IMG/VR virus record: IMGVR_UViG_3300010158_000027
Location: 186,001-250,000 of that record
Length of the DNA: 64,000 bases
Direction: 5' to 3' (one strand)
The notes beneath the pieces were generated by a model. That model ran no database searches, was not told the origin of the DNA, and saw nothing but the letters and a program-made list of their open reading frames with translations. Below, in pieces: positions 6,135 to 63,919 of the stretch. A program made the position numbers and the translations under genes. Within the stretch, counting starts at the first letter, position 1; the number at the start of each line of letters is the position of its first letter.

Positions 6135-6224
6135 ATGACAAATGATTTAACAATTAATTGGTGGTATAATACCACCTTGGATAGTGGTACGGTAAAAATA
6201 AACGTTAATTATAATATATTATGA
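6135..6224 (+). CDS. 29-aa small ORF (MTNDLTINWWYNTT...)
   Basis: Starts right after the promoter; stop overlaps the next ATG (ATGA). Confidence 0.45.
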   Translation: MTNDLTINWWYNTTLDSGTVKINVNYNIL

Positions 6225-6475
6225 AACTAAGAATGGTTAAAACTTATAGTGTTTACCAACTTTATGACACGATGGAAATCAATAAAGAGGATTATCCTGA
6301 ACTTCAAGGGATGTCGGATGAAGATGCGATTTCATATTTGGATGAAAACATGTATGAATTTGAAATTAAAGGTAGTCAGGAAGGTTCGTTGGTAAATGAA
6401 TTTGAATTCAATCAAGAAATGCTTGAGGATGAAATTTTTGATGAAGAGTATGAACTAAAATTAATTAAAGAGTAA
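6221..6475 (+). CDS. Acidic hypothetical protein
   Basis: In operon, coupled start/stop. Confidence 0.6.
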   Translation: MKLRMVKTYSVYQLYDTMEINKEDYPELQGMSDEDAISYLDENMYEFEIKGSQEGSLVNEFEFNQEMLEDEIFDEEYELKLIKE

Positions 6476-6685
6476 ATGGACGATATTATTAAACCAAAAA
6501 TTAACATTAAGGAACAACCAACCGTTAGTTGTGAAAAATGTGAGTCTAAATTTTTTAAAGAAGTCGTGATGTTAAAAATAGTATCAAAAATTTTAACAGG
6601 TAGTCATGAAGATACTATAATACCATTCCCAACTTATATGTGTAACGAATGTGGACACGTTAATGTTGAATTTGAATTATTCTAA
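6476..6685 (+). CDS. Small zinc-ribbon protein
   Basis: CEKC...CNECG. Confidence 0.65.
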   Translation: MDDIIKPKINIKEQPTVSCEKCESKFFKEVVMLKIVSKILTGSHEDTIIPFPTYMCNECGHVNVEFELF

Positions 6686-6693
6686 ATTCCGAT

Positions 6694-6840
6694 ATGGAAA
6701 TTGGCAAAATGAAAATAACTGAAGCATTACCACACTTAAATGATGTGGCTCGAGCTTATGGTTTAAGGTTGAATAGAGTTAAGGAATTTAAAATGGCTAG
6801 ATTGATTTTAGTGAACTTATACGGTAGAGAATTATGTTAA
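6694..6840 (+). CDS. 48-aa small ORF
   Basis: Fills the gap between neighbours and overlaps the next start. Confidence 0.5.
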   Translation: MEIGKMKITEALPHLNDVARAYGLRLNRVKEFKMARLILVNLYGRELC

Positions 6841-7067
6841 CACACAAAGAATTTTACGTTTGGTTAGATGGGTATCTAACAGGTAAACTTGAGAATAAAC
6901 ACATCGATATTGTCCCGATAGTTGAAAAAATGGGGGAGGTAAGAGATGAGTTAGAAATTGATTGGGCTTCATTAAGAAGCAATAAAAAAACACCCCCATT
7001 TAACCCGGTAACAATGCCGTTTGGGGATAAGGATGATTTAGGTCATCCACCAAAAATTGTAATGTAA
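6834..7067 (+). CDS. Hypothetical protein
   Basis: In operon. Confidence 0.6.
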   Translation: MLTHKEFYVWLDGYLTGKLENKHIDIVPIVEKMGEVRDELEIDWASLRSNKKTPPFNPVTMPFGDKDDLGHPPKIVM

Positions 7068-14122: not shown

Positions 14123-15049
14123 ATGGAATATAAATTTGACATATTAGAATCAAAACCAATCACTAATGAGATTATAAAAAATGGTGATAAAAAAATATAT
14201 AATGTTGATGGGAATATTACCGCATCAACATGGGTTAGACAAGAAATAAAAGGTAAAAAGTGTAACCTTGACCACCCAAAGTTAAGTTCTGCGCTATCAG
14301 TTAAACAAAGTGGGTATAGTAAACTATGTGAAGGGTCATTTGGGTATTTTTATAATAACGGAAATAATGTTTATTATAACGGAACAAATGTTAGTATGTT
14401 TACGTCTTGTTTTAGTGGGAAATCGGGGTTACCGATAATACCTGAAAATTTTATTAAAGTTAGTTCTATGTTTTCGGCTCGTAAATTAATTGAGACTAAC
14501 TGGATTAACTGTAAAGACGAATACTTAGCACCAAACGAAGAACACGAACAATACCACCAATTCACGAATGACAGTGTTGTATATTCATTATTTAATAACT
14601 CAAGTCAACAATCCAGCCTTCGTCAAATCACATATAAAGGACAACTATGGGACATTAAAAACGAATTTTTTTGGATGTCAAAAGAAGAAATGACGGAACT
14701 CGCAAATAACAACAACTATAATGAGTTATATGGTGACGCAAGAACTGACAAAAATAGATACGTTCACACCCTACTATTCGGTGAACAAAACATATACGAA
14801 CGACTATCACCTGACGCTAAAATAGTGTTAGATAAGGCGACAGAACTTGTTAGAATGTCAATGACAATGAGAAGTCACTTCGCTGACGATCATAACCACC
14901 TTAATAGTTGGGATGCTGGTTACGCACAACTTAAATTGGTATGGAAAGAGTATTTCCCAGAAGAATTTAAAGAATTTAGACAATTATATAAAAATTTGGA
15001 AAATAGAATGAGACCTTTAGTTTATGAACTTGGATTTTTATTAAAATAA
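14123..15049 (+). CDS. Probable specificity/target-recognition subunit of the adjacent R-M protein
   Basis: Starts 2 nt after the MTase stop; position matches the C-terminal TRD of IIG enzymes. Confidence 0.45.
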   Translation: MEYKFDILESKPITNEIIKNGDKKIYNVDGNITASTWVRQEIKGKKCNLDHPKLSSALSVKQSGYSKLCEGSFGYFYNNGNNVYYNGTNVSMFTSCFSGKSGLPIIPENFIKVSSMFSARKLIETNWINCKDEYLAPNEEHEQYHQFTNDSVVYSLFNNSSQQSSLRQITYKGQLWDIKNEFFWMSKEEMTELANNNNYNELYGDARTDKNRYVHTLLFGEQNIYERLSPDAKIVLDKATELVRMSMTMRSHFADDHNHLNSWDAGYAQLKLVWKEYFPEEFKEFRQLYKNLENRMRPLVYELGFLLK

Positions 15050-28384: not shown

Positions 28385-30055
28385 ATGTCAGATGTGACAA
28401 CACTTTTTAAAAAACAACAAGTTATTTATACAACTGAGGTTTTTGAGAATTACAACAAAATACCAACAGTAAAAAAAGATAGTGATCCGATGGATATCTT
28501 TACTCATGTTTCAGCAACCCCTATACGATCGTTCGGGACATTCACATTGAAGTATACAACTCATGACGAAAACCTTTTTTTAGAAAACTACGGAACACCA
28601 TTGGCTAGTGTACATATGAGAAGAAAAACCTTAGTTATTGAGGAGACCGAAAATAAAATCGCACTTAAAATTTATAGTTATAATAATATTAGAGACGTAT
28701 CAAAAAGATTTTTTAGAGTTAGACGTGAAATTAGTTATCTGACATTCAACATTAAAAGAAAAACATTTTATTCGGGAATACTTAGACTTAAAAAACGAGC
28801 TAAAGTTGGATCTAAAATGTCCATGTATAGAACCGACTTAAATACTATGGAGGTTATTAACAGTTTACGTTATTTTAATATGGACCCCAACCCTAACTAT
28901 AGTACTAATCCCCTCTATGATGAGGTGACTAAAATATTTTTAGATAGGGTTGCTGAGAGAATGGACGTTAAGTTTGATAATGAAGATATGTTGCCAGAGG
29001 ATAAATTCTATCAGTTGTATTTGAAATTCTCAGGAATTAAATACCCAGACGCATTCTCTAAGTTCAAATCATACTACACACCAAAAAAAGAAATTAGGGA
29101 AAGTGGGAATAATCTGGTTACTTGGTTCATGACTAAAAATAAGTTTAAAGGAACAAAAATCAGAACGTTATTAAATAAATATAATAATGTTGACTTGCGA
29201 GGGGTTAATGAATTTTATAGTCTACTAGGACAAGACTTATTTAATAAAGTTAATAATGAGTGCTTTTTAAATGACACCGCCATAGGTGAGTACTTTAATG
29301 GGGTATACACTACACAAGTTTATGATTTAAGTAAAAAGGAACGTGAAAACATTGTTAAAATATTAAACACAACAACCACCAATACGTTATTAAACTCTTT
29401 ATATGATCACATCCGATATAAATCATCCTTAGCTCGATATGGTGAAAACGTTAAAATTTTAGCAACTAACTACGATGATTACGTTGTTGAACATACAGAA
29501 TGGTCGACGATTGTGCAATCTTATCGAACTGGTGTGGTTAATCGATTCTACGGTGATGATGCGTATTTGATTGAAAAACCAATTATTCATGATGGGGAAA
29601 CATATTACCCCGTACTACTAAAAACGACAGAACAATACGAGTGTGAGTCTATGATTCAAAATAACTGCGTTAGAACTTATAGTGAGAAACCTTATTGTTT
29701 TATTGTGTCTTTAAGAAAGGGGAATGTGAATGGTAATGACAGAGCTAGTGTTGAGCTACGATACTCGAAAGACGGACTTAAGGTTATGCAAAAACTAGGT
29801 AGATTCAATAAACCACTTACAGATGAGTGGATATCACCAATTAACGAATTGGAAGGGTTCGCCAAGTATCTTTATGGTAAAGACATCATAAAATTACCAT
29901 TAATGGAGAAAAGATTTCCAAATGGTAAGGTGGTTAAAACACTGTCTATATTTAAAAATGATGACATGATTAAAAATATGTACCCGGTTTGGAATAATGG
30001 TAATTGTGCTTTACAAGAGAATATGGTGGATTATAATCTATTAGACGATTTTTGA
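28385..30055 (+). CDS. PcfJ-like domain protein
   Basis: C-terminal ESMIQNNCVRTY..FIVSLR..RASVEL..QKLGRFN. Confidence 0.7.
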   Translation: MSDVTTLFKKQQVIYTTEVFENYNKIPTVKKDSDPMDIFTHVSATPIRSFGTFTLKYTTHDENLFLENYGTPLASVHMRRKTLVIEETENKIALKIYSYNNIRDVSKRFFRVRREISYLTFNIKRKTFYSGILRLKKRAKVGSKMSMYRTDLNTMEVINSLRYFNMDPNPNYSTNPLYDEVTKIFLDRVAERMDVKFDNEDMLPEDKFYQLYLKFSGIKYPDAFSKFKSYYTPKKEIRESGNNLVTWFMTKNKFKGTKIRTLLNKYNNVDLRGVNEFYSLLGQDLFNKVNNECFLNDTAIGEYFNGVYTTQVYDLSKKERENIVKILNTTTTNTLLNSLYDHIRYKSSLARYGENVKILATNYDDYVVEHTEWSTIVQSYRTGVVNRFYGDDAYLIEKPIIHDGETYYPVLLKTTEQYECESMIQNNCVRTYSEKPYCFIVSLRKGNVNGNDRASVELRYSKDGLKVMQKLGRFNKPLTDEWISPINELEGFAKYLYGKDIIKLPLMEKRFPNGKVVKTLSIFKNDDMIKNMYPVWNNGNCALQENMVDYNLLDDF

Positions 30056-30056
30056 T

Positions 30057-30401
30057 ATGGAAGAAAAAAAAGATTTTATACTACCTAACTACATAACGGA
30101 GATATATGAGTCGTCCTTTACTATTTTACCATCTATTATACAAACAAAAAATATAACAAAGGAAGGTATTGATGAATTGATAAAAAAAAATAAATTAGTT
30201 TGGTATCGAAAGTTTTTTGACGGCAACAAGTTATTTAATTTAGAGGGGTTATTAATGTATGGGACTAAGATGGATATGATTTATTATGAAAAAGTGGGGG
30301 GAGAAAGTGTCTATACTTTATATATTCTAACAAATGGGGAGAATGATGAGATGATTTCCTTTTTAATAAAAAGTCTAAATAAATTCAATACAATCGATTA
30401 A
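30057..30401 (+). CDS. Hypothetical protein
   Basis: In operon. Confidence 0.6.
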   Translation: MEEKKDFILPNYITEIYESSFTILPSIIQTKNITKEGIDELIKKNKLVWYRKFFDGNKLFNLEGLLMYGTKMDMIYYEKVGGESVYTLYILTNGENDEMISFLIKSLNKFNTID

Positions 30402-30402
30402 T

Positions 30403-30687
30403 ATGAAAGTTGTTATTTTATACACAATGAAGGGATGTCCTTATTGTACCATGATTAAAGAAGAGTTAGAAAAATCAAACATTGATTTTTTAGAAAGAGA
30501 CATTGACGAATATGAACAGGAATATGATGAATACTCAAAACTAATAGAGAATGAATATATACCCGCGTTTTTACTTCTCACTCTTGATAATGAAGATAAT
30601 CCAAACAATATTAAATTATACGCCCCCGAAAGAGATTTCCAGGATATCCACGAGGGCGTTGAAATGGTTAAGGGGTATTTAAAATAA
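30403..30687 (+). CDS. Glutaredoxin-like protein
   Basis: ILYTMKGCPYC thioredoxin-fold motif. Confidence 0.85.
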   Translation: MKVVILYTMKGCPYCTMIKEELEKSNIDFLERDIDEYEQEYDEYSKLIENEYIPAFLLLTLDNEDNPNNIKLYAPERDFQDIHEGVEMVKGYLK

Positions 30688-31560
30688 AATTAAATCGCCA
30701 ACCATATTTAATTTTTTCCAAGGCGCATTGTCATCGTCATTAATTACATCATCGACGTGGTTAATTTCTGATGACAGATACAATTCCGTTAGTTCACTAA
30801 CTGTAAATGGAAACACATCCAATATTAATGACGTTAGCCACGGGGTTTTAACTATGTGGTTGTCGTTATAAATGAATAAATTAATATTCTCGTTATCTAT
30901 TGAAGATATTTTGTTTTCGGACGTTAATTTAACGTTCAGTTCTTTAGTTATACCAACCATTGATATATTATGAAAAATATGTTTTAAAGCCATGTGGTAT
31001 AACTTTTCGTTATTGTTTGATAAACCATAGAATTTTTCTGAAATGTAAGTCTCTTGGGAAAAATCAGATTTAAATAATTTATAATCACTAAACTTTGATT
31101 TTAAAATATGAACCACATCATCATTTTTTTCTGATAAACAATCGTAATAAATAGAGAGATTTGATTTATCTAATTTTAAATTAAAATATATGTTTTTATC
31201 AACAAATGAGTTAACGAATTTTTGTATGTTAAAATCGTTATAATCTTTTTTTAGTTGGTAGTCGATATCTATCGAATCATATTCGGGATCGGTAGTGTAG
31301 TTAATGATGTCAATAACTCTAATAGTCTTAGATAAATCTTCACTATATTTAGATGTAAACTCTTGAAAAATGTCAGCAACCATCAATGGTTTATCCGAAG
31401 ACGTTTTACCCTTTACGATAAAAAAATTCCTAACGTTTATTACTGAGATTTCAGTTTTGGCGTTAGGAACGGACTCATTTATTTTTTTCACTATAAGACT
31501 TGCAAAAATATTACAAAGGTTTTTGCCGTCTAAAAAGTTATAGTATTCTGTTGTATTCAT
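30679..31560 (-). CDS. Degenerate S-adenosylmethionine synthetase (MetK)-like protein
   Basis: N-terminal DGKNLCNIFASLIV...PNAKTEI..FFIVKGKT and C-terminal APWKKLN resemble MetK termini, but the GHPDK, GAGDQG and GGGAFSGKD motifs are absent. Confidence 0.55.
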   Translation of the reverse strand: MNTTEYYNFLDGKNLCNIFASLIVKKINESVPNAKTEISVINVRNFFIVKGKTSSDKPLMVADIFQEFTSKYSEDLSKTIRVIDIINYTTDPEYDSIDIDYQLKKDYNDFNIQKFVNSFVDKNIYFNLKLDKSNLSIYYDCLSEKNDDVVHILKSKFSDYKLFKSDFSQETYISEKFYGLSNNNEKLYHMALKHIFHNISMVGITKELNVKLTSENKISSIDNENINLFIYNDNHIVKTPWLTSLILDVFPFTVSELTELYLSSEINHVDDVINDDDNAPWKKLNMVGDLILF

Positions 31561-31861: not shown

Positions 31862-33058
31862 ATGGGATTAAAAAATAACGTCAGAATGGTTTTAAGAGAG
31901 CAAGATGAGGAATGGGTGAGCGTTTCACCTGAAGAGTATATGGACTTGTTAAAGTACGTTAACGGTGATGGATCGATTATAAACCGACTACCAGACTATA
32001 AGGGTAAAAAAATTAAAATTGATGGTGATTTAAATTTAAGTTATAATGGTGACATAACAAATATTGATAGTATTGATTACGTTGATGGAAATTTAGATAT
32101 ATCCAAAACGAATATAACTTATTTCGATAAAAATAAAGTTAAAGGTTGGTTCAGATATTATAGTAGTAGAATGGAGCAAATCGAAAATAAAAAGATTTTA
32201 GATAAAAAACTTAAAGTCCTTAATGGGTATCGAGAGAATGGTGAATGGAATGTGGAAGATAATGACGACGAGGTATCAAATGAAACGGAAGCTCTCTTTT
32301 TACATCTTATGGATATCGGATCTGTGGGTGAATATGAAAACGAAGAAGGGGAAACTGTACCTGAGGATAAATATTTTATTTGGACTGATAGTAATCATAA
32401 ATATTATGAATGGCTTGGAGATGAAAATGGCGAAAGCGAATGGTTGGTGATACCGGATGATAAGATAGATGATGTTGCTAGAGAATATCTGCAGGATAGG
32501 ATTGATGAGTCAGGTTATGAAACGTTCAGATCGTATGTTTGGGAAAATAATTTAGACACAGATCGAGTTGACAAATGGTTATATGACTATTATTCGGATG
32601 ATATAACAAATAATCCAGAGGAATTCGACATCCCAAAAACCCTTTCACATCAACAAAAAAACTACGTTAATATTTATACACAAAAAATAGAAAAACTAAA
32701 AATCAGATTAAACGACGAGGAGTTAGACGAAAATCAAGTTGAAGAAATTGAAGATGAAATAACCGACATCGAAGAAATTATTGAGGACATAAACGATTCT
32801 CCAGAGGGGGATTACGACGAGGCGGCTATTGAGGATGAAATAAATGGGCGAGTTAATGATGTTGGTTCTGATTTTTTAAGACACCTGAAGGATATGGGTT
32901 ATGATGATGATTATTTTTTAGAATTCGTTGACATCGATGGTGTTATTACCGATATAATTAATGATGACGGTTATGGTAATATTTTTAATGGTTATGATGG
33001 TAGAGATGATGAATATAAGGTAAACAATAAGTGGTACCACGTAATGAGACAAAATTAA
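31862..33058 (+). CDS. Acidic late protein with short GDLNLS/GNLDIS repeats
   Basis: TATTTAT 5 nt before ATG; leader ending VLRE. Confidence 0.7.
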   Translation: MGLKNNVRMVLREQDEEWVSVSPEEYMDLLKYVNGDGSIINRLPDYKGKKIKIDGDLNLSYNGDITNIDSIDYVDGNLDISKTNITYFDKNKVKGWFRYYSSRMEQIENKKILDKKLKVLNGYRENGEWNVEDNDDEVSNETEALFLHLMDIGSVGEYENEEGETVPEDKYFIWTDSNHKYYEWLGDENGESEWLVIPDDKIDDVAREYLQDRIDESGYETFRSYVWENNLDTDRVDKWLYDYYSDDITNNPEEFDIPKTLSHQQKNYVNIYTQKIEKLKIRLNDEELDENQVEEIEDEITDIEEIIEDINDSPEGDYDEAAIEDEINGRVNDVGSDFLRHLKDMGYDDDYFLEFVDIDGVITDIINDDGYGNIFNGYDGRDDEYKVNNKWYHVMRQN

Positions 33059-35475: not shown

Positions 35476-35499
35476 TTTGGAACACAAAAGTAGTATTGC

Positions 35500-35593
35500 T
35501 CCTAACAGCTGGGTGTATGAGAAGGTTTGCTTAGATGAACTTTAAAATTACCACTAAACTTGATAGCAAACTTTCTTATACACCTTGTTAGCA
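35500..35593 (+). repeat. attC-like site A (TCCTAAC...GTTAGCA, 94 bp)
   Basis: 20-bp inverted arms; near-identical to 62681-62774. Confidence 0.8.
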
Positions 35594-35664
35594 CCAGTAC
35601 GGTGATTTTAATATAAAACTTGATTAATTGGAAAATAAGTAGTATATTTGTAAAAAATAGAATT

Positions 35665-42279: not shown

Positions 42280-43155
42280 ACCGACCGAAACAGTCACCAC
42301 AGTTAAAAAAAGTGAATATAACACCTCCCTTTCTTTAAACGTGAAACTAAATTAAGTCATTGGGCCGTGTATGGTCCATTAAAATAAACCACGAAAGTGG
42401 GATAAAGTGAATTTGCGAGTGTTAGTAGATTTGCGTCTTGGGAAACTGAGGTCGAGTACACAAGTGGGATATCATCCGACCTTTAGTATTGAGGGCGACG
42501 CTTTAGGGAAAGTGGTTGGATGGAACGGCAATGTGGATTGTCAGTCTGAGGAGGGAACTCCAATAAGAATAACCCATAGGTATCAAGCGAAAAATATAAA
42601 TTCCAAATATATAATTGCGGATACCATTATAAAAGGGGACTTAAAACCGAAAGGTAAGATAAAGAACGAGTGGTGTCGCTATTATCCCTATCAAAGATCT
42701 ACCAAGATCTTGATATGAAGTAATCTTAAAATATGGAAATGGGGACATTTCACGAGGTAGTCAGGTATTCTGTTTTTCAAAAGAAAATGGATCCTAAACG
42801 GACCGCTACTTTGATTCATCCACAACACACAACTTATTACTAAATTAAGTAAAATTAACTAAAAATAAGCAAAAGTGTTCGTTACGATATGACGGAAGTT
42901 ACCCACCTATTCACTGGCTGTCAGTGGAACGTGATAACCGCAAGTTTGACCGTATTTTTATGAAAAATCTCTAGGACGTCGAAATCCGAATCAGGACGCA
43001 ATCTTGATGAGACAGGAGTAGTAAGAGAGTAGTTGTATCGTCAAGGAGTGATTGGTCTAACCAATCGGTAATGAGTGTTACAGGACAAAATCCTGTGGAT
43101 AAGAGTAGAATACATAATGACTCAAAAGACACTTAATAAAAACTATAATCTCAGG
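42280..43155 (+). ncRNA. Large ornate structured RNA, GOLLD-like candidate
   Basis: ~880 nt without a credible ORF, GC-richer than its flanks; many GNRA-capped stems; long-range GAGAGTAGTT/AACTATAATCTC closing stem; followed by a tRNA. 5' boundary approximate. Confidence 0.7.
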
Positions 43156-43176
43156 TTTTTTTTAATATTCAAATAT

Positions 43177-51612: not shown

Positions 51613-51684
51613 AGTCAGTTAGCTCAGTTGGTAGAGCAATCCCCTTAAAAGGACGTGTCATTGGTTCGAACCCTTTACTGGCTT
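51613..51684 (+). pseudogene. Degenerate tRNA behind its own TTGACA-N17-TAATAT promoter
   Basis: Perfect acceptor (AGTCAGT/ACTGGCT) and D-arm; anticodon and T stems poorly paired. Confidence 0.55.
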
Positions 51685-61599: not shown

Positions 61600-61689
61600 A
61601 TAAAGAAAGAATTAGGATGGACTGAACAAACGAGGACAGAAGGACATAGGCAATTTGTTTCTTTGGTTAAACCACAAATGTAGCCTTGT

Positions 61690-61820
61690 TGCTAACGGTT
61701 GAGGGTTTATTTAGTGGCGACTTTACGCACAAAACTTAATTAGAAATACAAAACTTGATAATATGAAAACTGATAATTTGAAACACGAAACTAAGCCATT
61801 GAATAAACCCTTTGTTATGC
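61690..61820 (+). repeat. attC-like site B (TGCTAAC...GTTATGC, 131 bp)
   Basis: Arms AGGGTTTATTTAGTGGC / GCCATTGAATAAACCCT. Confidence 0.8.
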
Positions 61821-62056
61821 GAAGTTTTTTTAAGAAACCAAGTAAGATTATAGAGGTGGAAATCCCAAAAGGTTTTTTCAATTGTGGCGTAAGTGTATGC
61901 AACCACTTTTTTGCAGATACAAATAATAGCGTAGATTGGAAAACGCTTAAATTTCCATTACCAAAACCATTAGGTAAAAAATGGGAGATATTAAGATATG
62001 ATATTGTGAATGAAGAAAAAACCATTGTAGAATTAGTTTCTCGTGGGTGGTTCTAA
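61763..62056 (+). CDS. Cassette 1 ORF (start lies inside site B)
   Basis: ATG within the attC-like loop; GTT crossover is an in-frame Val codon. Confidence 0.6.
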   Translation: MKTDNLKHETKPLNKPFVMRSFFKKPSKIIEVEIPKGFFNCGVSVCNHFFADTNNSVDWKTLKFPLPKPLGKKWEILRYDIVNEEKTIVELVSRGWF

Positions 62057-62062
62057 AATTTC

Positions 62063-62193
62063 GCATAACGATACTCAGATATATGGAGTTTTTTCTTAAA
62101 TTGAAATAATAAACTTAAATAATATGAATAAAGATAATAAGAACACAGAAGTTAATGACACAGATAAAAAATTACATATATCTGATGTTAGAA
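62063..62193 (+). repeat. attC-like site C (GCATAAC...GTTAGAA, 131 bp)
   Basis: Arms TCAGATATATG / CATATATCTGA. Confidence 0.8.
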
Positions 62194-62363
62194 ATAGTAT
62201 TCAAGAACGGATTAAAGGACATAAAAACAACATCAGTAGTTGTTTAGAGTTAATACAGACTAAAGGTAGAGAAACTGATGTTGTTATTAACTTATCAGTT
62301 AGTATTAGGAACTCAGAAATTAGAATATCTGAACTGGAATTAGTTCTTGAATATTGTTTCTAA
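62124..62363 (+). CDS. Cassette 2 ORF (start inside site C, stop inside site D)
   Basis: In-frame GTT; the TAA stop is the TAA of TTCTAAC. Confidence 0.6.
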   Translation: MNKDNKNTEVNDTDKKLHISDVRNSIQERIKGHKNNISSCLELIQTKGRETDVVINLSVSIRNSEIRISELELVLEYCF

Positions 62364-62434
62364 CGTTTTGCAACTACGCTTAACGGCTATCGGAAGCGAA
62401 CGTTTCAAGCCGTTGAGTGTAGATGCTGTTAGGT
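62358..62434 (+). repeat. attC-like site D (TTCTAAC...GTTAGGT, 77 bp)
   Basis: Arms CTACGCTTAACGGCT / AGCCGTTGAGTGTAG. Confidence 0.8.
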
Positions 62435-62464
62435 GCAGTATTTTTAACAAGTAAATTTAAAATT

Positions 62465-62686
62465 ATGATAATTGATTACAATAAAATAATAGAAAAGCAT
62501 TTAGGTGTTAATACTCCTCAATGGATAAAAGACAATGTATATAGTTGCATTAAAGAAATAGAAGAGCAAAATAAAAAAGAATGCAGTTATATCTCAGATG
62601 GAAGGTTTACATCAGGCAATTGTCTTTATTGCGGAAAATCCAAATACACTCACGGTTTATCGGTAGGTTCGTGCTATTGCAGCTAA
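62465..62686 (+). CDS. Cassette 3 ORF with CLYC motif (stop inside site E)
   Basis: Own AAAATT-ATG start; TAA within AGCTAAC. Confidence 0.6.
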   Translation: MIIDYNKIIEKHLGVNTPQWIKDNVYSCIKEIEEQNKKECSYISDGRFTSGNCLYCGKSKYTHGLSVGSCYCS

Positions 62687-62774
62687 CGATTGGGTGTATG
62701 AGAAGGTTTGCTTAGATGAACTTTCAAATTACCACGAATACTCATAGCAAACTTTCTTATACACCTTGTTACAA
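62681..62774 (+). repeat. attC-like site E (AGCTAAC...GTTACAA, 94 bp)
   Basis: 20-bp arms; sister of site A. Confidence 0.8.
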
Positions 62775-62835
62775 CCAGTACGGTTAATTTAAGATAAAAC
62801 TTGACTAATTGGAAAATAAGTAGTATATTTGTATT

Positions 62836-63030
62836 ATGGAAGAAGAAAAACACATTATTGAAACTTTAGCTAATATTGGCGTAGAAAAAGAAACAACGCT
62901 TGAAATAATGCACGAACTCTTATTTAATTCAAGTAACTACGCTGATAATCAAGATGCGATTGACACTATGTTACAAGAAAAATTGGGGATTGATTTATAC
63001 ATAACATTAACACAATATAAAAAAATATGA
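62836..63030 (+). CDS. Cassette 4 ORF a
   Basis: TTGACT-N17-TATATTTG promoter 4-6 nt upstream. Confidence 0.55.
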   Translation: MEEEKHIIETLANIGVEKETTLEIMHELLFNSSNYADNQDAIDTMLQEKLGIDLYITLTQYKKI

Positions 63031-63392
63031 AAAACAGATTTTACATAAAAAACTTTGAAGAAGCCGCTTCATTGAGGAAAAAAGAATTAGACGATGCTTT
63101 GGTTGAAAAATACGAAAAACTCTTATTTCTAGAGAATATCCCAACTGAAGATAAATTAGAATTATCTCAATTGTATGAAGATTTTACTAAGTTTTTAATA
63201 AATGTTGATAATTGTGAAGAAAATTTTCAAACTCTCTTCATTCCGATAACTAAAAAACTATATACTGAGTTTAAAGAAACTGATTTTATTAAAATATTTG
63301 AAATGTATTCAGAGTGGTGTGTTAATTCTAAACTAGAGAATGACGATGAAATATTTAAAGGGTTTATGACGTACTATAAATCGAAGCGATAA
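63027..63392 (+). CDS. Cassette 4 ORF b
   Basis: ATGA-coupled; ends just before TATTGGTTATAAC. Confidence 0.6.
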   Translation: MKNRFYIKNFEEAASLRKKELDDALVEKYEKLLFLENIPTEDKLELSQLYEDFTKFLINVDNCEENFQTLFIPITKKLYTEFKETDFIKIFEMYSEWCVNSKLENDDEIFKGFMTYYKSKR

Positions 63393-63397
63393 TGTAG

Positions 63398-63430
63398 TAT
63401 TGGTTATAACTAGTGGCTATACGAACTTTA
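63398..63430 (+). repeat. Partial attC-like site F (left arm only)
   Basis: TATTGGTTATAAC complements GTTACAACCAGTA of site E; no clear right arm. Confidence 0.55.
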
Positions 63431-63559: not shown

Positions 63560-63919
63560 ATGAAAAATAAAATGCTTATAGTGGACGATGAGGAGGATAT
63601 CTTAATATTCTTATCATATCACTTTAATAAAAATGGTTTCGATGTTACAACAGCATTAGATGGAGCCATAGGGTTATCTGAATTTGAAAAGAAAAAATTC
63701 GATATTGTTATAACGGATATACGTATGCCAAATATGGATGGTATAGAAATGTGTGGTGAGATAAAAAAACAAGATGATACAACCCCAATCATATTTTTAA
63801 CTGCGGTTACAGATGATTATAAAATATTGCACGCAATGCGAACAGGTGCGTCCCAGTTTGTTGATAAACCAATCAAACTAGATGAACTAACAGATATCGT
63901 TAACGGTTTAATTAATTAA
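63560..63919 (+). CDS. Stand-alone response-regulator receiver domain (CheY-like)
   Basis: LIVDDE, VITDIRMPNMDG, IIFLTA, FVDKP. Confidence 0.92.
   Translation: MKNKMLIVDDEEDILIFLSYHFNKNGFDVTTALDGAIGLSEFEKKKFDIVITDIRMPNMDGIEMCGEIKKQDDTTPIIFLTAVTDDYKILHAMRTGASQFVDKPIKLDELTDIVNGLIN

Follow-up and report, generated by a model that had tools for sequence, protein, structure and literature searches.

Integrons consist of a tyrosine recombinase of the Xer/IntI clade (IntI), a primary site (attI) and arrays of compact, promoterless and co-oriented gene cassettes bounded by attC sites, structured sites of variable sequence that lie between AAC and GTT boxes. In these arrays the R' of one site is complementary to the R'' of the next, a stop codon is often inside R'', and the cassette boundary and the attI junction lie at G|TT of R'. 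Classical attC sites are recombined as bottom-strand hairpins, and in 263 canonical attC sites the bottom strand is 2.12 kcal/mol more stable than the top strand, with G:T pairs at 1.24 per site on the bottom against 0.39 on the top (Nivina 2016, PMC5027507). Recombinase-less clusters (CALINs) exist as well, and they have been reported in virulent phages, where some of them are recombined by IntI1 (Qi et al. 2023, PMC9892861). Single-strand hairpin recombination of gene cassettes is regarded as the defining innovation of integron integrases and it is tied to their I2 insertion. In T4-type phages, small orphan genes in plastic genome regions are bounded by PeSL promoter/stem-loop motifs, near-identical sequences thought to shuffle by homologous recombination (PMC2839356, PMC4122927). 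Moreover, the IS200/IS605 and REP/RAYT systems rely on strand-specific recognition of hairpins with a short conserved motif next to them. Here, we describe hairpin sites between small genes of a freshwater jumbo phage which belong to a large and apparently undescribed family of phage gene-cassette boundaries. These sites resemble integron attC sites but appear to work on the opposite DNA strand, and in related phages they sit beside a compact Xer-like recombinase; we found no published description of them.

The window analyzed is a stretch of 64,000 nucleotides, positions 186,001 to 250,000 of the IMG/VR record IMGVR_UViG_3300010158_000027. A geometry scan of the whole 281,269-bp genome finds exactly five sites of one design, namely TAAC, a 5-nt bulge, a 17-20 bp stem, a loop, the return stem, 1-2 T, and then GTTA. 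All five sites lie on the + strand, and a reversed-sequence control gives 0 hits in this genome. The features are as follows, in coordinates of the window:

35490..35601 (+), site E (scanned core 35504-35589), a solitary copy of the hairpin termed X, about 90% identical to site D, with a GTAG-type R'', bulge AGCTG, right spacer TT and R' GTTAGCACCAGTACG; no matching R'' partner lies within 6 kb downstream.
61682..61828 (+), site A (scanned core 61694-61816), the start of the array, with an outer-left R'' of the GTAG type 61682-61696 (TAAC 61693-61696), bulge GGTTG 61697-61701, left arm 61702-61718, a 76-nt loop 61719-61794 that holds the ATG at 61763, right arm 61795-61811, TT, and R' from 61814 (GTTATGCGAAG).
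61697..62069 (+), cassette 1 (hairpin A, its ORF and R''); ORF 61763-62056 (97 aa, orphan) starts in loop A and stops 13 nt before the AAC of site B; its ends, GTTATGCGAAGTTTT and AAAATTTCGCATAAC, pair at 14 WC + 1 G.T of 15.
62055..62201 (+), site B (scanned core 62067-62189), with R'' 62055-62069, bulge GATAC 62070-62074, left arm 62075-62094, a 71-nt loop 62095-62165 that holds the ATG at 62124, right arm 62166-62185, T, and R' from 62187.
62070..62364 (+), cassette 2; ORF 62124-62363 (79 aa, orphan) starts in loop B and its stop is the TAA of the TAAC of site C; the ends pair at 13 WC + 2 G.T of 15 (27 nt at 85% in a separate comparison).
62350..62442 (+), site C (scanned core 62362-62430), of a short class (69 nt), with R'' 62350-62364, bulge GTTTT 62365-62369, arms 62370-62388 and 62408-62426, a 19-nt loop, T, and R' from 62428.
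62365..62687 (+), cassette 3; ORF 62465-62686 (73 aa, orphan), whose stop is the TAA of the TAAC of site D; the ends pair at 11 WC + 2 G.T of 15.
62673..62782 (+), site D (scanned core 62685-62770), the X hairpin, with R'' 62673-62687, bulge GATTG 62688-62692, arms 62693-62712 and 62746-62765, a 33-nt loop, TT, and R' from 62768.
62688..63410 (+), cassette 4; hairpin X and R' are followed by a leader shared with site E that holds a promoter-like TTG (62801-62803), a 20-nt spacer and TATATTTG (62824-62831), and then by ORFs 62836-63030 (64 aa) and 63027-63392 (121 aa).
63394..63410 (+), terminal half-site, a GTAG-type R'' (GTAGTATTGGTTATAAC) with no bulge or hairpin after it; it pairs with the R' of site D at 12 WC + 1 G.T of 15, which closes the fourth cassette.

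The initial annotation had noted 4-5 unpaired nucleotides on the left arm against only 1-2 T on the right, and this asymmetry is confirmed, with a left bulge of always 5 nt in these five sites. For the arms it compared, it had also claimed two G.T pairs per site on the top strand, which is slightly off for site B. Read on the + strand, the inner stems contain two G.T pairs in site A, one G.T and one G.A in site B, two G.T and one A.A in site C, and two G.T in sites D and E, which have the same stem; no site has an A.C pair on +. The A.A mismatch, previously assigned to a site D, is in the GTTTT-bulge site, which is C in our lettering. [quoted passage not shown] Folding energies calculated with DNA parameters show that the + strand is more stable than the - strand in all five sites, with -17.2 against -16.4 kcal/mol for E, -10.7 against -9.5 for A, -9.9 against -8.4 for B, -16.6 against -10.6 for C, and -16.7 against -13.8 for D. 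As D and E are about 90% identical copies, there are only four independent sites in this genome and the significance therefore comes from the wider family.

The same design occurs in hundreds of sites in IMG/VR phage contigs, in arrays of about 400-nt promoterless cassettes. In 1.34 Mb of related phage DNA around X sites, the stricter version of the geometry scan gives 404 hits against 0 in the reversed-sequence control, which rejects chance palindromes in AT-rich DNA, and 315 unique stems were obtained, 223 of them high-scoring. These loci were gathered by searching for the X hairpin, and hence the counts of X and of its neighbors are biased. The 223 distinct stems share the asymmetric junction, with a left spacer of 5 nt (4-6) and a right spacer of 1-2 nt, and they have no extrahelical bases. 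In an alignment of 33 distinct stems, 16 of 23 consensus pairs show compensatory changes and one G.T at stem position 13 is invariant; by alignment columns, G.T is invariant at 30/86 (33 of 33) and near-invariant at 12/100 (32 of 33). Across the 223 stems, G.T pairs number 403 on the sense strand against 53 on the other, that is 1.81 against 0.24 per site, and the sense strand is more stable in 212 of 223 sites, by 3.23 kcal/mol on average. Strand composition was rejected as the cause of this excess, since the GC and AT skews predict a ratio of only about 1.15 against 7.6 observed. The initial annotation had inferred a distinct site family that folds on the sense strand, as ssDNA or RNA, possibly served by a different recombinase or an HUH-type enzyme, and three of these four suggestions are supported while the HUH enzyme is not; the strand bias is compatible with folding of RNA as well as of top-strand ssDNA.

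The units between the sites have the signature of cassettes. Over the 11 nt beyond GTTA/TAAC, the R' of site n-1 pairs with the R'' of site n at 7.23 WC + 1.30 G.T of 11, while the same-site comparison gives 3.88 and a random pairing 3.94, and in the window the scores for cassettes 1 to 4 are 14.5, 14, 12, and 12.5 of 15. The cassettes are compact and promoterless, with the ORF starting about 18 nt after GTT and the stop lying within TAAC. The cassette ORFs of the window have no Pfam or PHROG family. The 26 kb between sites E and A were considered as a giant cassette, but this was rejected because only 3 of 8 positions match beyond the common GTTAGCA, and because E has no partner within 6 kb.

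Two independent anatomical signs put the crossover at R'' (TAAC|), which is the 5'-AAC-3' of the top strand. Firstly, 162 of 164 upstream ORFs stop at or before TAAC, while 75 of 127 long-loop sites hold an ORF start in the loop that reads through GTT. Shared flanks were mostly uninformative on whether a hairpin travels with its upstream or its downstream ORF, since both flanks usually differ, although the X hairpin is shared with its downstream flank but never with its upstream flank alone. Secondly, in about 20 related contigs the array ends at a half-site, TAAC|TATnATATAT, next to a recombinase gene. The most recurrent neighboring protein is a Xer/IntI-like tyrosine recombinase of about 266 aa that carries PF00589 + PF13495 (for example the genes at 1835-2632 of locus L037 and 6189-6992 of locus L005, both from the collected phage contigs), and it lies 257-941 nt downstream of the last site, co-oriented, in 19 loci. 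The half-site, in the form TAAC|TA(T/A)nATATAT, lies about 52-56 nt before its ATG in 15 of 20 distinct loci, and the recombinase is present in 20 of 50 whole records. Its best matches are XerA and then IntI, both below the NCBIfam cut-offs, with 150 bits on TIGR02249 against a cut-off of 265. It aligns to VchIntIA 18-181 and 259-316, with 29 aa where VchIntIA has 77, and the I2 insertion is thus absent. In the genome under study, by contrast, PF00589, PF01797, PF00239 and the array-end recombinase protein all gave no match, and hence the array of the window has no recombinase in this genome.

Taken together, we interpret the five sites, with moderate confidence, as cassette-boundary recombination sites of a phage-borne, integron-like system with mirrored polarity. 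Each mobile unit runs from a 5-nt bulge through a hairpin, T(T), GTTA plus about 11 nt and one or a few ORFs to about 11 nt plus TAAC. The two outer segments are complementary, and in a circular or looped-out single strand they would extend the hairpin into one long stem, broken only by the asymmetric bulge. We propose, as an inference, that a compact Xer/IntI-clade tyrosine recombinase, presumably the neighboring one, cuts at or just after the 5'-TAAC-3' of the folded sense strand and exchanges that strand with a primary site, TAAC|TATnATATAT, just upstream of its own gene (TAAC|TATTATATAT would be such a target). New cassettes would therefore enter at the recombinase-proximal, downstream end of a co-oriented array. 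No recombination event was observed, and the reaction itself, the strand used, and the exact cleavage point are inferred. The only joint at site boundaries is 62190 to 62684, GTTA|TAAC, which skips cassettes 2 and 3 in one contig of a public metagenome run, but it rests on 24 nt, may come from another phage and is not reliable; holes in contig coverage prove nothing. The four-cassette array (61682-63410) and the solitary site E are a recombinase-less cluster, presumably acquired from or mobilized by a co-infecting relative. In related phages the recombinase gene follows at the position of the terminal half-site, whereas here none does, and the right-hand side of this half-site (TAGTGGCTATACG) matches the consensus primary site only loosely. 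Similarly, 5 of 9 near-complete records with X sites lack a recombinase. It should also be considered that the conserved G.T pairs are equally conserved A.C mismatches on the bottom strand, which could in principle be the recognition marks. Also, all sites are transcribed in the sense direction, so selection on mRNA hairpins could produce or add to the G.U bias.

Compared with integrons, the recombinase lies downstream of the array and is co-oriented with it, and the cassette boundary and the primary-site junction are at R'' rather than at G|TT of R', so that the hairpin belongs to the downstream ORF, which may start in its loop. A more far-reaching possibility, which we regard as about as likely as not, is that this is a previously undescribed class of phage-borne cassette platform, in which a compact Xer-like tyrosine recombinase without the I2 insertion captures gene cassettes by recombining sense-strand DNA hairpins at TAAC. 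This would be either an independent invention of single-strand cassette recombination or a relic of the Xer-to-IntI transition. It would shuttle orphan genes, methyltransferases and other accessory genes among freshwater and marine phages ranging from 35 kb to more than 400 kb, and it would give a concrete mechanism for the turnover of orphan and anti-defense-type genes in virulent and jumbo phages. The simple rules of the sites make them easy to annotate in viromes, while existing integron finders would probably mislabel or miss them.

Among the alternatives, the one that survives best, although we consider it unlikely, is that the hairpins act only in RNA as intercistronic structures of the sense transcript, in 3'-end protection, processing or termination, and that together with promoters they resemble PeSLs, with the mosaicism arising from homologous recombination between shared copies and without a site-specific enzyme. 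The G.U pairs lie on the transcribed strand and 211 of 223 sites are co-oriented with genes. Sites D and E share the hairpin plus a promoter-like leader, and X is nearly identical across more than 100 contigs and could support homologous exchange. However, no U tract follows the stems. In the window only D and E are alike while A, B, and C have unrelated stems, and more than 130 unrelated stem sequences of the family share only about 10 nt, so neighboring sites cannot recombine homologously. Moreover, an RNA role does not explain the half-site next to a recombinase gene at the array ends, the sharp ORF boundary at TAAC or the 15-nt terminal inverted repeats of every cassette, although it could coexist with recombination.

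It is very unlikely that these are ordinary attC sites of a CALIN picked up from a host integron and recombined by a host IntI as bottom-strand hairpins with crossover at G|TT of R'. The AAC/GTT boxes, the hairpins of variable sequence, the promoterless single-ORF cassettes and the end complementarity resemble integrons, the extra unpaired bases lie on the AAC arm of the sense strand as canonical extrahelical bases do (PMC5027507), and CALINs of virulent phages are a published precedent (PMC9892861). Nevertheless, the G:T and energy polarity is reversed relative to the 263 canonical sites, and the spacers are 5 / 1-2 nt in gapless stems, where canonical sites would have about 5 / 5-6 nt and extrahelical bases near L''. 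In addition, ORFs cross R' but, with few exceptions, not R'', the primary-site junction is at R'', and the associated recombinase lacks the I2 insertion. The X hits in genome collections lie in MAG contigs of scattered taxonomy, none of them an isolate, though these were not inspected for a neighboring intI. Notably, the one clearly family-like site tested by Qi et al., P12002L_attC1 of Polaribacter phage P12002L, was the only one of six that IntI1 failed to recombine (PMC9892861). Least likely are ends or targets of a single-strand HUH (Y1) transposase system of the IS200/IS605 or REP/RAYT kind, since, despite the top-strand folding bias, a GTAG motif in many outer-left flanks and TnpB (OrfB_IS605) genes in 6 loci near arrays that look like cargo or separate insertions, PF01797 (Y1_Tnp) gives no match in this genome at E<=1 and is not among the recurrent neighbors, the recurrent array-end gene is a tyrosine recombinase, and each cassette is flanked by two different hairpins rather than by matched left and right ends.

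With respect to distribution, neither the X unit nor the C unit gives a match in 50,697 GenBank phage records, and stem A has no exact copy in IMG/VR. The sites have no hit at gathering score to Rfam 15 families, with only chance-level hits (E 0.47 and 0.72) at a permissive threshold. The relative L070/G051, one of the collected contigs, is only a 57-kb fragment and does not cover the A-D array. The public data sets that hold this phage are all freshwater DNA metagenomes kept as contigs and none is RNA. The stem type of site C occurs in arrays in three IMG/VR contigs, and the X left arm occurs in 109 IMG/VR stretches and 21 MAG contigs.

The jumbo phage analysed here originates from freshwater metagenomes and is represented by a 281,269-bp IMG/VR virus record, which is estimated to be 96% complete, has about 31% G+C and carries nearly all of its genes on the + strand, the window comprising bases 186001-250000 of this record. 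It contains a full-length GOLLD RNA at window 42753-43157 on the + strand (Rfam RF02032, 277 bits, E 5e-78) and a tRNA at 51613-51684. We scanned both strands of the whole genome for the arrangement AAC, bulge, stem, loop, stem, spacer and GTT, and found five sites of one design, all located on the + strand, each with a 5-nt left bulge and 1-2 T on the right:

35504-35589, + strand: site E, left bulge AGCTG
61694-61816, + strand: site A, left bulge GGTTG
62067-62189, + strand: site B, left bulge GATAC
62362-62430, + strand: site C, left bulge GTTTT
62685-62770, + strand: site D, left bulge GATTG

A reversed-sequence control gave no hits. Sites D and E are about 90% identical over the site plus about 60 nt of downstream leader. 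Read on the + strand, the non-Watson-Crick pairs in the stems are two G.T in A, one G.T and one G.A in B, two G.T and one A.A in C, and two G.T in D and E, while no site has an A.C pair on this strand. Applying DNA parameters, the + strand folds better than the - strand in all five sites, by 0.8 to 6 kcal/mol. The initial annotation, which had described an asymmetric bulge and two top-strand G.T pairs per site in the arms compared, with one A.A in a single site, is therefore right apart from small details for site B and the lettering of the sites.

These sites belong to a wider family. The left arm of the stem shared by D and E (termed X) occurs in 109 stretches of IMG/VR contigs and in 21 MAG contigs of scattered taxonomy, and it always appears as the whole element of about 86 nt, with both G.T pairs kept and with mosaic flanks. 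The C-type stem occurs in three further contigs, again in arrays. Application of the geometry scan to these loci (1.34 Mb) yielded 315 unique stems, of which 223 are high-scoring and have TAAC/GTTA boxes. As the related loci were collected with the X hairpin as bait, the counts of X and of its neighbours are biased. The sites lie in dense arrays with up to 14 sites per locus and a median spacing of about 400 nt, 211 of the 223 are co-oriented with the ORFs, and site length is bimodal, at about 85 and about 120 nt. An alignment of 33 distinct 85-nt sites shows that the structure is selected: 16 of 23 consensus pairs show compensatory changes, TAAC-G and T-GTTA are invariant, and there is an invariant G.T at stem position 13.

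Notably, the strand bias of this family is the reverse of that of canonical attC sites. Across the 223 stems there are 1.81 G.T pairs per site on the sense strand and 0.24 on the other, and the sense strand is the more stable one in 212 of 223 sites, with a mean energy difference of 3.23 kcal/mol, while in 263 canonical attC sites there are 0.39 G.T pairs per site on the top strand and 1.24 on the other, and the bottom strand is the more stable one, with a mean difference of 2.12 kcal/mol (Nivina 2016, PMC5027507). In total, 403 G.T pairs on the sense strand stand against 53 on the other, and taking one stem per cluster (132 clusters) gives 241 against 34, whereas the strand composition of this phage would predict a ratio of only about 1.15. 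However, the bulge lies on the same arm as 5'-AAC-3' of the sense strand, which is where canonical extrahelical bases lie, so the polarity of the extra bases is canonical and only the pairing polarity is reversed.

The sequences between the sites carry a cassette signature. Beyond the shared GTTA/TAAC, the next 11 nt of R' of site n-1 pair with R'' of site n at 7.23 WC + 1.30 G.T of 11, while the two halves of one site pair no better than random (3.88 against 3.94). In the window, the corresponding 15-nt scores are 14.5 for A to B, 14 for B to C, 12 for C to D, and 12.5 for D to a hairpin-less R'' at 63394-63410. The GTAG-type R'' motif occurs only three times in the genome, at E, at A and at 63394-63410. 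Cassettes are compact and mostly promoterless, and the ORFs of the window's cassettes are orphans. A few classes of conserved leader, about 55 nt long, follow X hairpins (window 35587-35650 and 62768-62833; related loci L001-L109). A motif like T(T/G)A(A/T)TACGAAGCAC recurs both about 35 nt after R' and just before GTAG-type R'', so that it flanks the ORF plus its own promoter as a direct repeat, and this may be a second layer of insertion into an "empty" cassette. Other recurrent genes within or beside the arrays (loci L031, L095 and four others; L039, L066, L104; L061, L080, L116) encode TnpB (OrfB_IS605 + Cas12f-like TNB), GIY-YIG nucleases, N6/N4 DNA methyltransferases, a cREC receiver, and an unknown 178-aa protein that often follows X directly.

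Two independent observations place the inferred crossover at R'' (TAAC|) and not at G|TT of R' as in integrons. Firstly, 162 of 164 upstream ORFs stop at or before TAAC, of which 34 use the TAA of TAAC as the stop and 39 end 13 nt before, and in 75 of 127 long-loop sites an ORF starts inside the loop and reads through the right arm and GTT. The window follows this rule, as the ORFs at 61763 and 62124 start in loops A and B, and the stops lie 13 nt before the AAC of B and inside the TAAC of C and of D. Secondly, the most recurrent protein near arrays is a tyrosine recombinase of about 266 aa (PF00589 + PF13495), which in 19 loci lies 257-941 nt downstream of the last site, co-oriented and with no good site beyond it. 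About 52-56 nt before its ATG, in 15 of 20 distinct loci, the last cassette ends in a normal R'' that is followed by TA(T/A)nATATAT instead of a bulge and hairpin. The array end looks like an attI-type primary site, but it is joined to R''. As IntI cuts within 5'-AAC-3', which lies in R'' on the top strand, the junction implies by analogy that the top strand is exchanged, in agreement with the G.T bias and with the linkage of X to its downstream flank.

The recombinase is closest to archaeal XerA (PDB 4a8e; NF040815 at 181 bits, below the cut-off of 220), followed by IntI (TIGR02249 at 150 bits, below 265, in two stretches). Compared with VchIntIA it has 29 residues where IntI has 77, so the integron-specific insertion is missing, while the catalytic R, K, HxxRH and Y motifs are present. 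It occurs once in 20 of 50 whole records with X sites, and in 4 of 9 that are at least 90% complete. The window's genome has none and no remnant of one, and it also has no HUH Y1 or serine recombinase. Just downstream of the array end, where related phages carry the recombinase gene, a stand-alone CheY-like receiver domain protein (PF00072, E 1.7e-30) is encoded at window 63560-63919 on the + strand.

Taken together, we interpret the window as holding a four-cassette array (61682-63410) and a solitary X site (E) that belong to a phage-borne, integron-like system with mirrored polarity, in which the recombinase is here absent. We consider it more likely than not, although far from certain, that the mechanism is top-strand hairpin recombination at TAAC by the Xer-like enzyme. 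What weighs against this mechanism is that no recombination event was seen. The one suggestive joint, in a metagenome contig of run X1, connects the GTTA of site B directly to the TAAC of site D (window 62190 joined to 62684), skipping 493 nt, which is exactly cassettes 2 and 3, but only 24 nt lie on the shorter side and it may come from another phage. A contig of run X4 matches up to the start of the AAC box of site A (61694) and then continues with unrelated sequence, suggesting that a relative diverges exactly at the start of the array. Also against this mechanism, the conserved G.T pairs are conserved A.C mismatches on the other strand, and all sites are transcribed, so selection at the RNA level may contribute to the bias.

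An RNA-only, PeSL-like reading is unlikely, although it was judged without RNA data for this phage: PeSLs of T4-type phages are the nearest functional analogue for D and E, which pair a stem-loop with a promoter-like leader, but this reading does not explain the half-site, the sharp ORF boundary, or terminal inverted repeats around more than 130 unrelated stems. Ordinary attC sites served by a host IntI and, least of all, an HUH system are very improbable, and each fails several tests.

In the literature searched, which was incomplete and hence is no proof of novelty, no description of such a system was found. CALINs were reported in virulent phages (Qi et al. 2023, PMC9892861), and one of the sites of that study, P12002L_attC1 from Polaribacter phage P12002L, has the geometry of this family, with TAAC, a 6-nt bulge, a 10-bp stem, 2-3 nt and then GTTA, and lies on the sense strand of methyltransferase cassettes. 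Importantly, it was the one site of six that IntI1 did not recombine. This isolated phage (L136 among our loci) carries short-stem sites of the same geometry around three methyltransferase genes (29240-31330, minus strand) and two long-loop sites elsewhere (14503-14624 and 32798-32924), and it could serve as a culturable model. Assignment of the host to Bacteroidota is only suggested, by the promoter-like TTG-N20-TAnnTTTG after D and E, by a Cellulophaga-phage match of a neighbouring ORF, and by the P12002L sites. Outside the window, at G000:C1:116746-116965, there is a cluster of repeated perfect 18-nt palindromes (TCACATCAATTGATGTGA) with flanking repeats, which is unrelated to the cassette sites. 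Finally, in the last cassettes before the recombinase in the loci L019, L039, L043, L081, L089 and L125, ORFs in X-headed cassettes share an N-terminal motif (M..ELRKFI....REYLNE-like) although the rest of each protein differs.
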